From the NCBI RefSeq assembly GCF_052425735.1, contig NC_135768.1, forward strand, positions 8,742,001 through 8,806,000: a stretch of DNA of 64,000 bases, given 5' to 3'. A program made the position numbers and the translations under genes. Positions 41,801 to 53,800 of the stretch are shown piece by piece. Numbering within the stretch: the stretch's first letter is position 1; each line of letters starts with the position of its first letter. Below the pieces are notes generated by a model. It was given only the letters and a program-made list of their open reading frames with translations, was not told where the DNA came from and searched no databases. The stretch comes from Oculina patagonica. Its lineage: Eukaryota.

Positions 41801-44800
41801 GTTGTACAGGTAATATGCAGCTAAATAAAACCCCGAAAAAGCTCTTCTGTTTTTATTGACAAGCATTATTTACAACAAAGACAGTTTTAGCTACAGCGCT
41901 ATATCGCAACATTTGTATTATCACTGCGCGAACAAAAATGCATATAAATGAATGGCCATATTGGCTAGCATCGAGTAGCAGTACTGTACAATTTCGTCGG
42001 AAGTCACTTATCGAATCTTCAAGGCCGTCTACGATTACATATCATTTCTTGGGTGTTACAAAAATAGCACCTCCGATTTTTCTCGTTGAAACAACGCGAA
42101 AATAGATAATTCGATTTGTAAATAATTTATTCTAAAGTAACGGATACCTCTTTGTAAACGCATCGAGTTAACCAAGCTGTGAAAACCTGCTCAAGATTTC
42201 GCCGTCAGAAATTTGCGTGAACATTATTTCATACCATCTACGGCTAAAAATAGCGAGTTGTTTTAAGTGTACATATTCCACGATCCAAGACCCAGAATAT
42301 TCTATTACTTTTTACCGTAACATTATACAAAAGAGTACACTTCGAGGTTAAACTGATAGCTCATCGCTAAACCAAAAGTCACGAAAATACATTTTTCTTT
42401 GGCAAATTATTTTGCAAAGCTGCGCCTTAGCGGAATCAACAAGAGCATGTAATCGCAATTTTTTTAAGCCGCGTTTTTTGTAACGAAGCGCGCCTTGCGT
42501 AAATTCACTAACATACGTTTTTAAGGTGAACTGAAATAACAAAGAAAGGCTCGCATAAATGGCCAATTTTTTTTTTCTCTATCTCTGCGACCAGTTTTCT
42601 GGCCGAGTTGTTCTGGCTCTGGTCAACACACGCATAATGCAGAAAAAGGCAGAAATTTACTTGTCTATTACCGCCATTCTTCGCGCCGAATTGTTATTCG
42701 AAAGCAAAGCAAACTCTCTGTAACAACGTTGCAAACTTACATATTCATACAGCTAGCATCTTGCATATAACGATGACAGAGAAGTGCCCTTAAAACAATT
42801 ACCACTCACAAGCTAAAAATCAGAGCGGTTTGGTTTCTCACCTGAAATTTGGAGTGTTGTAAGCGGATTGTCTTCGGTGAGTTTTCCAACTGTTTAGCGC
42901 GTTCGTTGTGACTGCTATAAGAATCAGTCAACCGCCACCTGAGGTGATGTAAGTAGAAACACGTTTTCCCTTTACTACCTGGGTTACTAAAATACCATAC
43001 AAAGAACAGACAATGCAACTGTCAATTACATTATGTTAAAAGGTTTCATTGTGCTTGTTCTCGACCACTCACGGCGCTGTATTGTGCGTGACCAATCACA
43101 AGGCACGATGCGTGTCTGCACGTAAACTCTTGTACAATTATTGGGCGCCAACGCAATTGATTTACCTTCGTCAAAATCCAATACAGCGAAGCAAGAAAAT
43201 AAACTAGCTTTCAAGTTAACAATTTCCATAAAGATCACATTTTTGTTTGTTATTTGGTAGTGGAAAAATTTTCATAAAGCTCTGTTAAAAATTGGGCTTT
43301 ACTACATTTGGACGTGCTTGTGGCTTATGACTGCATTTACGTTTTTTGTAACCCACTAAAACAGAAATATAGTCACTGAGCACAACATCCTTTTCCGCAA
43401 GTGTCAGGTTTGTTAAAGTCAAAATGATATCAAACAAATATATCACGGATTTGTTCGTTTGCGTGGGTGTGTAAGCGATATACTAAGGGCAAGCAAGTCC
43501 TAATATAACCGGGGTAAATTTCTGAAGCTATTTCCGTATAGCTGAAAACTTTAGGGAAGTAAATATCGGTCAATCAATGGCGCTGGTATAAAATGAAATT
43601 ATAAAATCCCACTACACCCCCAAAACCTTCTTTTGCCCGTATTTTGAACACTACTGGTGCAGAATTTATTCAACAGTTTTGAATTACACTAGATCCCCAT
43701 GGCAGCATTTTGATAGATATTTATGGCCTTTTAATGTTTGAGCGAGCTCCCTCTCAATCATCGCATGTATTAAAGACTATAAACAAGTTGGAATTAATAT
43801 GACCTGTACAGACGTCGCTCCGTTTTATCGTTCACAGGTGGTTAACTGACATGAAATGGCCATCCGCATTATATAAGTTTGTTTCACCCTCTCTCATTAA
43901 GAAAACAAAATCATTATTTTTTTTCATTTATTTTTTTATATGAAAAAAGTCTTTAATTAATCAGTGCCAAAGAAAAATTCTGTCTTGTTTCTGTTTCGTT
44001 AATCTTTCCGGGCTATTAATAAAACTAAACTGAAAAACGCGTTCGGATAGAGAAAAGTGTAAAGTACGAGGGACATTCGAAACATTTACAGCTTAATGGG
44101 TTTTTATAAGACTTTGAAATGACCATCACTTCTCTCTTCTTCAGTGAGTCATTATTAATTAAGGCAATTTTCTAGGATCTCTTTAAAGGTATCGAGAATT
44201 TGCCGATAGCAATCGCGACTAAGAGGCGCCAATAGAAAAAACTTAAGTGTAATTTAGAGATTCTTGGGAAAAAGTAAAATAATTTTCCAAGGCATTTCGT
44301 TAGGTGAAAAATTTCCTCTTTGCTCGCCATTTCCTCTAAAATTATACTTTTTGGACAAAAGAATCGTAAATGAGAAGGATATTCCGCATCCTAGCTCTTT
44401 TTAAAAGACTTCAGAAATTTCATGAACAAGGAGAATGTAAAGCCATTTGATGACTTTCTAACGACTTATCAAAAGCTGCTGGCCTTGAAGGTATATGCGA
44501 ATTCATTGCGACATTCATAAATACATTTTCCTTTTAAAAGAGAACACACAATTATGGTTGTGTTCTCGCCGTAAAGAGGGATACTGATTTAAAATATGAA
44601 AATTTAGTTCGGCTAGAATGAAAGGTCTTTTTACCCCAAAGATCGAGTTGGAAAAAAAAGAGAATTTGCTGACCATGCCGTTCAGTACTAACATCGTAAA
44701 TAACTTGGAAAATCACAGGAATGAAATAATCGCTCAGGGCGCTCAAACTGTTTACATGTCTGCGACTAGAATTTCATACATGAACTACTGTTATGGCTTT

Positions 44801-50800: not shown

Positions 50801-53800
50801 CAGCGCTGACTTGGTCTAACTCGAGCTCGACATCTCGGCGCCGACAGAAATATGGAAGGCAGACCATTAACGGGTTAATTTTATGTTGAACAGCCGGTAT
50901 GGGTAATTATTTCACTCCATAGAGCGCTAATAAATTTTCTTTTATGCACTGAGAGCTCAGCAATGCATTCAACAGGTAACAATGGACGTAACAGCAAATG
51001 ATTGGTTTGTAAAACCGCGCAAACATGTTGTATTGTTTAAGGCAACTGTAAAAAGATATTGAATTCGAAGAAAAAGCACGCTTCATACAAACACAATTGA
51101 GTTTTAGTTTTTCAATTTAGTGTAGTGCATCGCACAGTAATACCGACCTAACAGACTTTTAAATGAACTTAACCAGTTGAGTGGACGTTTTTTAATTTAT
51201 TTTTAGGAAAGATACCCGTCAACGTTTGAGGAAGACAAAAATTGTATTTCATGAATAGGTTTCAATTGGAATCAGTAAAATATATTTTACCAAGCTTTAC
51301 ACAGCTGTTTGGTGGAAATGAATTGCGTGTTGTTTGCCTTGAATTGTAATTTTGAAGTTGTTGGCTACTTAGTAAGTAATTCTCACACTCTTCTACACAA
51401 AACACAAAAGCGCTTATTATCACGGAACGGTCATAATCACGCGCGCAAACTGTTTAACTAACACGCTAAATGTAGCGTAACATACAATGAATAACGAATA
51501 TGCATTAGACAGAGACTTAACTAAACACTGCTGAGAAATTTCCAGAACACAAAGATATACCCAAATTTAGGTTTCTACGGCTAAGACCATCCCCAGCAGC
51601 TAAACCAAAAATTTGGCCGAGTCTGCTGTAACTTGCTTAATATTGGATGATGATTTCATCAAAATAAAACTGAATCAATGGTAGAGTTTTTAACCTTTAG
51701 GCCCGAACTGAAAAAGCACTTTTCTAATTCACAGCTATAAAGAAATTCGACAAAAAAGAAAAATAAAACGGCGAATTTCAATGAAAATTGCTTTTTTGAA
51801 TTGTTTCTCTTGGCGGTTTTTTTACTAAGATAACCAGTCTTCAAAGAAAATGGAAGTATGAATTAATAATGCATCTCCAGTGAAAAGCTGGACTCGCATA
51901 AATTATCGCCTGAACAATGGCTTTTATTTGGAGTTTCGCTCTCCCTTGGTAACTCACGACAAACCGTTTGACTTCGTCTGAGACTGTTTAAGCTTTCGAT
52001 CCTAATGAAAATACCCAGCGCAAAGTTAACTTTTAACCAGTAGTGTTTTAGAACTCGCTCGAGCTGATAAATTCGTCTTTTACCCGGACTGGTGTTAAGC
52101 GCGTTATATTGGCACTCGTAAATCCAACTTTTCACGCAAGGTCACGCAACTAAGAACCTCGTTGTCGATTGTTTAAGTTAACTGTTTTCCTTCTGGAAAA
52201 TTAAAGCGAACTCGGTTAGAAACTGCACGGGTTCGCTACCAAACTTCAAAGATTTTAAGATGGCGCATTCAAGAACTTTCGTAGATTTTTGACAGGGTGT
52301 TTAAATCTTTCTTGCAATATATTTGCGCGGTTTTATTTCTGTAGCCAAGGTTTCATTTTTTTTTCGAAGCACATGTAATGATGAAATTACTTCGCAACTT
52401 CGCAGAACGGATATAACTGTAAATCGCTGCGAGGAACCCTTAACCCCAAATTGCCACCCGCCTGTTTTTCTTGAATCACATGTGTGGATAACTGTCGCCT
52501 CACAAAACAATTTTCTTTGTTGGGGTCTTAGATTCCCCAGCTTTTTTAGTGAATGAAATAAAAAAAGAAAACTTAGCTATCCGTGGTCGGTATACCCTAA
52601 TCCTGTTTACGATCTTATAATGACTACACGTTCCAGATCGTGTTTAGTTGTAATCGAACTTTTTCTCGCTGCAGGTGAAATTCGTGTCAAGTCAATTTTG
52701 TTACGCAAGCTTAAACAAGCATAAACTTCAGTTTTCTACTAAGGTCCGGTACTTGGTGAAAATGACAACTCCATCTTACAAACATGAGACCAAAATTTTG
52801 CGATCAATTCGTCGGGTGGAAATATTTGTTAATTCGACGAAAAATGTAAAACGATGTTAGTGCCCCTTTAGCAACACTATACCAGCTATTGACTTGTCGC
52901 GACAACATAAACTGAATTACATTTCGCTGCAATGAAATTTTGAGCCAGAATTTTGCTAAGAATAGCCAGAATTAAAACACATCTGATAGCTTAGAAGTAC
53001 ACACGCACATATAACTGTTTCGAGAAGATATATAAGACAAAACCGGGGTAAACTTTGTAAATATGTACTCTATATTTAAATACGTAATGTTTGATTACAA
53101 GATAAACAGGCTTCAAGAAACCATATATCACTTTACACGAAAATCGTTGTTCTCGTAAAACCTTGACACATTTCGGGGAAATTATGACGGGTTGTTAATC
53201 AAAACGATGTTAAAGGGTGTTAATACTTCGAGCGAAGAAATGTTGAAATGGGGATCGCGAAATTAACGCACTTAATAAATCATAACAGAATTTGTAAGTA
53301 AACCACTAACAAACTCACCTGAAATATCCGAATATTAACTGCACGCTCAGTGTTCCGTCTTCTCGATCAATGTTACGCTCGCTGAGCTCTCAAAAGTCGC
53401 GAAGTCTCGCTGTTTCGAACCAAGCAGTGTTGCAAAGCCGTTTTCGAAACTTTTTAAGTGTTGATAAAGATACGCCTGTTGGGTGACTAACAAAAAGCCG
53501 ACAATTACATTGTATTAAGGGATTTCATTGTTTCGTAAGCTTTCGTCACACCCTTTCATGCCTTTTGTATACAATACAAACATCAATTCGTACTAGATAA
53601 TGTATTCAAATTTGCCATGACTTGTATTAACCACACGAATGTAGTTATCACGCGATATTGGAACGACTTAGAGTAACAGATGATTCGGACAGAGTTGTCA
53701 ACGCGCGCCTTAAAAATAAGACAAAATGCGCTCTTGAAAAAAAGCGCGCGAAAAATTACATTTTCATTTCAGCTGGTGGGACAAGCAATGTGTTTACATA

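Follow-up and report, generated by a model that had tools for sequence, protein, structure and literature searches.

We analyzed a 64,000-nt stretch of the Oculina patagonica genome (NCBI RefSeq assembly GCF_052425735.1, contig NC_135768.1, positions 8,742,001 to 8,806,000 of the forward strand), referred to here as the window, with its first letter as position 1. This 64-kb window holds a DMRT gene on the minus strand that encodes a DM and a DMA domain (Pfam). Our interest lies upstream of its coding sequence, where two look-alike modules, A near 43 kb and B near 53.5 kb, each combine a conserved 30-nt element (the 30-mer) with a splice donor, and which an initial annotation had taken for anciently duplicated alternative promoters. 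Using the 286-aa open frame of the DMRT as the query of a protein search, we found that the closest proteins are coral proteins of the ‘DMRTA2-like / DMRT3 truncated-like’ kind (Orbicella 88%, Pocillopora 81%, Acropora 70%), and the gene looks like a stony-coral DM+DMA DMRT of the AmDM1 / DMRTA2-like type. In what we regard as the probable explanation, taken as a whole and including the descent and the regulatory role of the 30-mer discussed below, the stretch with the two modules is the multi-exon 5′ leader of this gene. The leader is at least 24 kb long and would reach up to about 33 kb if a distal exon is used. Its exons and those of the coding part are as follows (a slash within a sequence marks the splice junction):

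29725–30551, minus strand: last coding exon, with the DMA motif and a C-terminal Cys-rich tail (Pfam DMA, E = 3.1e-17; acceptor CCACAG/ATGAAGG)
31149–31522, minus strand: first coding exon, with the DM domain (Pfam DM, E = 3.2e-22; ATG at 31521–31519; acceptor AG at 31524–31523)
34199–34277, minus strand: leader exon 3, 79 nt (the 5′ untranslated region (5′UTR) of RNA contig L012 maps to 34280–34188)
42842–42938, minus strand: leader exon A, internal, 97 nt (acceptor CTCAG/GTGG, donor TTTCAG/GTGAGA)
53319–53658, minus strand: leader exon B, first exon (reaching upstream at least to 53658, as read from an orthologous RNA contig; donor TTTCAG/GTGAGT after 53319)
62697–62760, minus strand: candidate distal alternative first exon (donor AAAAG/GTAAGCG after 62697; its homologues are the far-upstream exon of pocilloporid RNAs and, in Orbicella, the exon with which isoforms X1/X2 begin)

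For the RNA of this species we analyzed Logan contigs of sequencing runs on window positions 42400–43500. Contigs of run X2 (0–2 mismatches) and of run X8 cover exactly 42841–42942 and run on beyond both limits. Past 42942 their letters match 53323–53352 exactly, and ahead of 42841 they correspond to the beginning of exon 3 (34277). When the shared CTGA is allowed for, the last base of B, 53319, is joined to 42938, directly after the acceptor CTCAG (acceptor at 42939). Both joints of an internal leader exon, to 53319 and to 34277, are thereby seen for exon A, and all leader splice sites are of the AG/GT type. The B donor is joined to the A acceptor in pocilloporids and Acropora as well as in this species. 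Because the donor of B is joined to exon A, the two modules are serial and not mutually exclusive: A and B are consecutive exons of one transcript, not rival promoters. Exon A is non-coding here, with an in-frame TGA, and the leader is purely non-coding, as no open frame is left in either exon A or the distal exon. The last AT of exon 3 together with the G of the next exon forms an extra in-frame ATG (AAAAT/G ATG, giving MMSEIL...), and the same start occurs in Orbicella isoform X3 and Pocillopora isoform X5. A 430-nt contig of run X1 was also recorded at exon A. It spans 42511–42940 at a word depth of 138 with an identity of about 96.5%, and every mismatch falls in its intron portion. The contig reads through the donor of exon A without splicing and terminates at the acceptor of this exon; it may represent DNA, intron retention or another 3′ end. 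Among the runs on record as RNA we found none holding module A; the poly-A raw-read run X23 has nothing on 42400–43500, which does not count as a negative.

In related corals the leader exons are combined in several ways. Orbicella-like contigs that encode the full protein have a 5′UTR leading from 53658–53318 to 34280–34188 and on to 31522, with exon A skipped. Pocilloporid contigs run from B, or from a far-upstream exon, to A and then to the DM exon. In Acropora we observed one chain from a B-type exon, with the 30-mer inside, to A at either of two acceptors and then to the DM exon, and a second chain from another first exon to A, exon 3 and the DM exon. Exon A and exon 3 are thus each skipped in some isoforms of the relatives. 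Exon A is coding in pocilloporid isoforms, where it supplies an N-terminal extension (GGVGQGF...SSRFR, by mapping of the Pocillopora peptide), and Orbicella isoform X1 carries exon 3 as VRDS...FGKM. The initial annotation had let the leaders of both modules splice to an acceptor one base before the ATG. The leader exons of relatives do join this acceptor, but the exon begins at 31522 (ATG at 31521–31519) rather than at 31523. Acropora and pocilloporids splice the A donor directly to this acceptor; in this species exon A is joined to 34277. The second Acropora acceptor is seen in contigs L025 and L033, whose B-type exon is joined to L022:345, directly after GTGTAG (GTGTAG/TTACCC), which is the GGGTTACTAA motif on the gene strand. 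Its counterpart in the window is:

42981–42990, minus strand: alternative 3′ splice site motif of exon A, GGGTTACTAA (minus strand TTAG/TAACCC), kept in four corals and used in Acropora

In the contigs of this species from the runs on 42400–43500 we observed no use of the GGGTTACTAA acceptor. The acceptor of exon A itself has a further peculiarity, as the exon starts with GT right after the acceptor AG in five species (CAG/GTGGCG, CAG/GTGGTA and, in Nematostella, CAG/GTGGTGAGT). This could indicate a recursive-splicing exon, in which CAG/GTGG acts as a new donor after the joining of B so that the leader intron is removed stepwise; exon A would then be dropped or kept, and the conserved block in front of it would serve this process. 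The skipping of exon A in Orbicella-like RNAs would fit. However, GTGGCG agrees with the donor consensus GTRAGT only at +1 to +3, and exon A is stably included here, in Acropora and in pocilloporids, where it is even coding. We consider recursive splicing very improbable.

Each module carries one copy of the 30-mer, about 180 nt before its donor:

43023–43052, minus strand: 30-mer copy A (ACAATGAAACCTTTTAACATAATGTAATTG in gene sense), within an intron of the RNAs observed, 85 nt before the acceptor of exon A
53502–53531, minus strand: 30-mer copy B, gene sense ACAATGAAATCCCTTAATACAATGTAATTG, transcribed within leader exon B

Copy A is intronic in the observed RNAs since the acceptor of exon A lies at 42939. 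The sequence comparison given in the initial annotation was reproduced: in plus-strand coordinates the 30-mers at 43023–43052 and 53502–53531 are identical at 25 of 30 positions and all five differences are A/G transitions; GGGT(T/G)ACTAA motifs are present as GGGTTACTAA at 42981 and GGGTGACTAA at 53481; the 12-mer CTCACCTGAAAT occurs at 42837 and 53314 and reads ATTTCAG/GTGAG on the minus strand, with 42842 and 53319 as last exon bases. The distance from donor to 30-mer start is 181 nt in A and 183 nt in B, the leader before the donor is free of ATG over about 150 nt in A and 189 nt in B, and the motif cores TACATTGTA and CATTGTT are found in copy B. The element is composed of two A(C/T)AATG(A/T)AA half-sites and TAATTG, and both copies have the same orientation on the transcribed strand. 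The pair is the only same-strand one in the window with at least 25 of 30 matches outside obvious repeats, and local alignment of the two 30-mers gives z = 6.5 against shuffles, with Acropora A versus B likewise beyond chance. For unrelated sequence the probability of five transitions out of five is about 0.004 (1/3 to the fifth power), and the transition-only mismatches favour a common descent of the two 30-mers.

The similarity by itself is only suggestive, because same-strand pairs with at least 25 of 30 matches arise in 1 of 8 Markov-1 random 64-kb sequences and the spacer and the third motif are not significant. A coincidence between two unrelated conserved elements, as the source of the likeness of the 30-mers and 12-mers, would be in line with this frequency of chance pairs and with the lack of significant likeness in the spacer and the second motif; 8 of the 12 bases of the 12-mer, moreover, are splice-donor consensus. 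Against this stand the ultraconservation of both copies and their restriction to this locus, the transition-only differences, the shared orientation and a donor distance that agrees within 2 nt; the Acropora copies are still more alike, both reading ACAATGTAATTG. A coincidence therefore appears highly unlikely to us. Genome-wide counts gave the 30-mer pattern exactly two times in the 529-Mb genome, both times at the DMRT locus, and a relaxed pattern (ACAATGA-N9-14-AATGTAATTG) three times, two of them here, while a control pattern was found once. Belonging to a high-copy repeat, the case in which the initial annotation would have given up its idea, is not what we observed: with two copies of the 30-mer in 529 Mb, and with both 451-nt regions being single copy, a high-copy repeat or transposon fragment was ruled out. 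An extended paralogy of the modules was rejected as well, as neither the spacers nor the region behind the 30-mers align above chance level, globally or locally. Of the ancient duplication that had been proposed, a constrained 30-mer in two copies thus stands, while homology over the whole module does not.

Next, we analyzed the conservation of the two copies. As a reference for the identity profile we used the 71-kb Orbicella faveolata locus (L020), which is colinear with the window at a background identity of 72%. Both 30-mers lie in sharp peaks with 98% identity in 50-nt windows, and only 1.9% of all 50-nt windows reach 96%. Copy B is 100% identical in Orbicella and near-identical in Pocillopora, in Orbicella-like RNA and in Acropora RNA; copy A is kept in Orbicella, Pocillopora and Acropora. 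The invariant parts of the element are ACAATGA and AATGTAATTG, with a linker that varies by 1–2 nt in copy A. The surrounding blocks A (about 43145–42900) and B (about 53910–53450) are conserved as wholes and have the same order in Pocillopora damicornis; block A is present in the Acropora digitifera genome and the B element in Acropora RNA. The element is thus held nearly invariant in both copies across Scleractinia, and at this locus only. That the pair goes beyond chance follows from the two copies in 529 Mb, the single-copy regions and the conservation of both 30-mers within the top 1.9%. Two parts of the blocks were recorded as features:

42960–43145, minus strand: conserved block A around the 30-mer, with inverted CCAAT boxes (TGATTGGTCA), TTACGTGC and ATTGTCT, from a four-species alignment and the identity profile
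53659–53910, minus strand: conserved, promoter-like block upstream of exon B, 82–100% identical to Orbicella in 50-nt windows and alignable to Pocillopora, including ATATCGCGTGATA and TGTATACAAAAG

The latter block would be the promoter of exon B, while block A may be either an intronic enhancer or a latent or alternative promoter. Part of the coral block A recurs upstream of the Nematostella vectensis DMRT, where AATGTAATTGACA followed by ATTGT is found about 4.6 kb upstream of the coding sequence (L045:5300–5510). An acceptor ATCAG/GTGG lies 72 nt downstream and is followed by a donor CCAAG/GTAAGA, the same layout as in the coral module A. Module A may therefore be older than the split of corals and anemones; the Nematostella likeness is suggestive only, because the 15-mer alone has E = 0.15.

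Module B serves as the first exon of the leader. RNA contigs L012, L016, L017 and L018 align to 53658–53318 and break off at its donor, and exon B is also where Acropora and pocilloporid contigs begin. Altogether, RNA contigs from three lineages have their starts within this exon or a little upstream. Use of the donor at 53319 was observed in this species and in three coral lineages. With respect to the two alternative promoters proposed initially, both junctions are true minus-strand donors of non-coding DMRT leader exons, and B behaves as a first exon with a conserved block upstream; exon A, however, is internal, and in RNA the B donor is joined to it. For a separate start site in module A there are no more than hints. 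If A and B were nevertheless paralogous alternative promoters, transcription would start near the 30-mer of each module, and a first exon of about 180–340 nt would be spliced to the DMRT coding exon, which would permit promoter switching between stages or sexes. Block A is indeed promoter-like, with conserved inverted CCAAT boxes 40–80 nt upstream of the 30-mer. Acropora contigs L029 and L027 begin 19 and 33 nt downstream of the A 30-mer, run unspliced through both exon A acceptors and then join the A donor to the DM exon; they could, however, be partly spliced pre-mRNA. The joint from the A donor to the DM acceptor in Acropora and pocilloporids would also suit such a promoter, and several Orbicella-like contigs break exactly at the DM-exon acceptor, as would be expected where several leaders converge. 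On the other hand, the B donor is joined to exon A here and in three other lineages, no contig covers 42943–43300 in the runs examined on 42400–43500, and the documented alternative first exons lie upstream of B, not at A. Two rival promoters thus appear unlikely, although less so than recursive splicing or coincidence, and we prefer the reading of A and B as successive leader exons.

The alternative first exons of the relatives are found at about 62.7 kb (in terms of the window) in Orbicella and pocilloporids, while that of Acropora is unplaced on the window. In the RefSeq models MSWSVDVVFNHSMKR is the distal first exon, with its homologue at window position 62697; here the donor is kept, but the Orbicella ATG is lost (CACATAACTTGG). 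Homology to the distal exon in the window extends over 62697–62760 and 62816–62951. The DMRT gene therefore probably takes up 33 kb or more of the window, with use of the distal exon seen in relatives only. For the Pocillopora ‘MTRN’ first exon, the search for a homologue (at about 55.3–55.5 kb) gave a weak alignment without a clear donor here. More than one first exon per gene was observed in each relative: distal or B in pocilloporids, distal in Orbicella isoforms X1/X2 versus B in Orbicella-like RNA, and two in Acropora. The initial annotation had suggested promoter switching; relatives do switch their first exons, but between B and exons upstream of B, not between A and B.

We then considered what the 30-mer might do. 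Copy B contains ACAATGTAA (DM-type), AACAATG (Sox-type), TAATTG (homeodomain-type) and an upstream open reading frame (uORF) of 7 codons. It has ATACAATGTAAT, and ACAATGTAA, the second half of the 30-mer, is the core of the selected mouse DMRT3, DMRT5 and DMRT7 probes (PMC1931443); by sequence match it agrees with the DM-site consensus (core ACA[A/T]TGT with flanks). Copy A has ATAATGTAA in this species, which is close to the DMRT4 probe AAAATGTAAC (PMC1931443), and Acropora copy A has ACAATGTAA. In the mechanism that we propose, the two copies would descend from one sequence by a local duplication older than the split of robust and complex corals. Both would act at the DNA level and would be bound by a DM-domain protein with Sox or homeodomain partners, and DMRT proteins could in this way auto- or cross-regulate both the B promoter and an element before exon A, either a latent promoter or an enhancer in the intron. 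We favour such a putative DMRT auto- or cross-regulation via the 30-mer because ACAATGTAA matches the published DMRT3/5/7 sites; the DM and Sox input, which had already been suggested in the initial annotation, is predicted from motif matches only. A comparable case is the medaka dmrt1bY proximal promoter, in which a Dmrt1 site mediates auto- and cross-regulation (PMC2820524). As in medaka, a DM-type site lies in the promoter region of a dmrt gene; the medaka site, however, is transposon-borne and was shown to bind and repress (PMC2820524), whereas the coral element, with its putative DM site, is ancient and confined to a single locus, where it occurs twice.

Several observations weigh against this overall reading of leader, descent and function. 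The spacers between 12-mer and 30-mer (174 and 176 nt) align no better than random pairs (P = 0.22), and the GGGT.ACTAA match with the region downstream of the 30-mer is not significant alone (P = 0.15). As no significant homology extends past the 30-mer and the donor 12-mer, duplication of a whole module is not demonstrated, and convergence of the two 30-mers on the same binding sites is a possible alternative to duplication. Copy A of this species has ATAATGT, one base off the core, and the DM core ACAWTGT shows no enrichment over the locus, with 5 occurrences against 5.5 expected. The case for a regulatory role of the 30-mer is made from conservation and motif match. Regarding the leader, runs X2 and X8 are labelled only ‘RNA?’, so that their RNA nature is inferred from the splice joints they contain, and the joint from exon 3 to the DM exon is known from the RNAs of relatives only. 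Finally, copy B lies in the mature 5′UTR and holds a uORF of conserved length, and for this reason a role at the RNA level or in translation is possible.

The uORF reads ATG AAA TCC CTT AAT ACA ATG TAA (window 53510–53530, minus strand). Its length of 7 codons is kept in five coral species (MKSLNTM, MKSPNTM, MISSNTM), whereas copy A loses the frame in Orbicella and Acropora. If the 30-mer worked on RNA, the uORF or a protein-binding site in exon B would control the translation of DMRT, and the copy before exon A would be a splicing regulator of exon inclusion or acceptor choice. Such a function would be in line with the same orientation of both copies on the transcribed strand, with the position of copy B within mature 5′UTRs of Orbicella-like and Acropora RNAs, with an ATG...TAA frame of 7 codons in five species that includes one synonymous change, and with the distance of copy A of 33–115 nt to two alternative acceptors of an exon that is skipped in the RNAs of some species. 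However, 1–2 nt linker indels break the uORF frame in copy A of Orbicella and Acropora, the conservation runs well past the uORF on both sides, and the peptide itself varies. We also found no shared or unusually stable fold (z = –0.1 and –1.5 versus shuffles for the 30-mers with flanks) and no Rfam match in 42000–54200 at E ≤ 1; on these two grounds a structured RNA was ruled out. An action on RNA is in our view improbable, and we retain the predicted action on DNA. A bolder extension would make the element an autoregulatory switch of DMRT that dates back to Hexacorallia or earlier and was duplicated together with the leader-exon donor, in which DMRT with a Sox or homeodomain partner would set the leader choice (start at B, latent start at A, inclusion of exon A). 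This extension is speculative and we give it little credence. If it were true, the amount of DMRT made at a given stage or in a given sex would be adjusted through the choice of leader, including the uORF and the additional ATGs, and a sex-related gene of a non-bilaterian would have a circuit combining transcription with leader choice.

The 30-mers are embedded in further conserved sequence. Between window positions 32000 and 57000 we counted 19 blocks of 50–120 nt with at least 94% identity to Orbicella against the background of 72% (for example 34380–34469, 39410–39499, 40960–41069, 42240–42359, 53010–53119 and 54880–54999), and the DMRT leader introns are a dense field of conserved non-coding elements. 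Like the conserved non-coding elements near developmental transcription factor genes, these are short, near-invariant blocks in non-coding flanks that persist over very long times; they differ in that here two blocks copy each other, each at a fixed distance from a leader exon. A repeat family with units of about 100 nt (GAAACCCTAGTGTGTGACCATTTAAATGAAAGCTATTGAGCAGTAC) forms short tandem arrays at 26006–26040, 46822–46970, 59497–59760 and 60395–60966, and occurs in the Orbicella locus as well (L020, 11.6–13.4 and 18.6–19.0 kb). Downstream of the DMRT gene, a 408-aa open frame on the minus strand (23557–24783) has a PA14 domain (E = 1.1e-5). The synteny is conserved, since in Pocillopora the PA14 neighbour is followed by PSME4, which also adjoins the Nematostella gene. 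Intron 1 of the DMRT gene contains a gap of 172 N (30915–31086). Within this intron (30552–30914), three related-coral RNA contigs (L005–L007) start and read straight into the last exon (30551–29725); they encode the DMA half only (P0003, 320 aa; also P0004, P0005 and P0008), which suggests an internal start or a retained intron giving a DM-less protein.

For Acropora millepora, a DM+DMA transcript and a DMA-only transcript of AmDM1 have been reported (PMC10194864). AmDM1 has the same domain make-up as the gene studied here and belongs to the closest family, and contigs L005–L007 mirror its DMA-only transcript. The account as cited deals with coding isoforms and not with leader exons or upstream elements (PMC10194864), and our gene is a putative orthologue of AmDM1. 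RefSeq models of the orthologues (O. faveolata XP_020605800-803, P. damicornis XP_027043085-090, S. pistillata XP_022791280/281, A. digitifera XP_015769373-384) describe the same gene with the same leader exons, and in them the acceptor that lies one base before the ATG is shared by several first exons. The models record exons only, and our gene differs from them by its non-coding leader, in which the frames of exon A and of the distal exon are lost. The exons are thus already implicit in the models of related corals and the structural part of our results is ordinary; the only new part is the duplicated element, a conserved cis-element and candidate autoregulatory site. A duplicated, locus-specific and ultraconserved element on two successive leader exons appears to be undescribed in the literature searched.

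DMRT genes are the one family that is tied to sexual development across animals, and to our knowledge almost nothing is known about the control of these genes in cnidarians. The present analysis provides an explicit exon model of a long coral DMRT leader and corrects the idea of two rival promoters. Furthermore, it singles out a small, twice-present and locus-specific element that contains a DM-type core and has stayed almost unchanged over hundreds of millions of years. This element is a testable target for binding assays, and an A-like module is also available in Nematostella.

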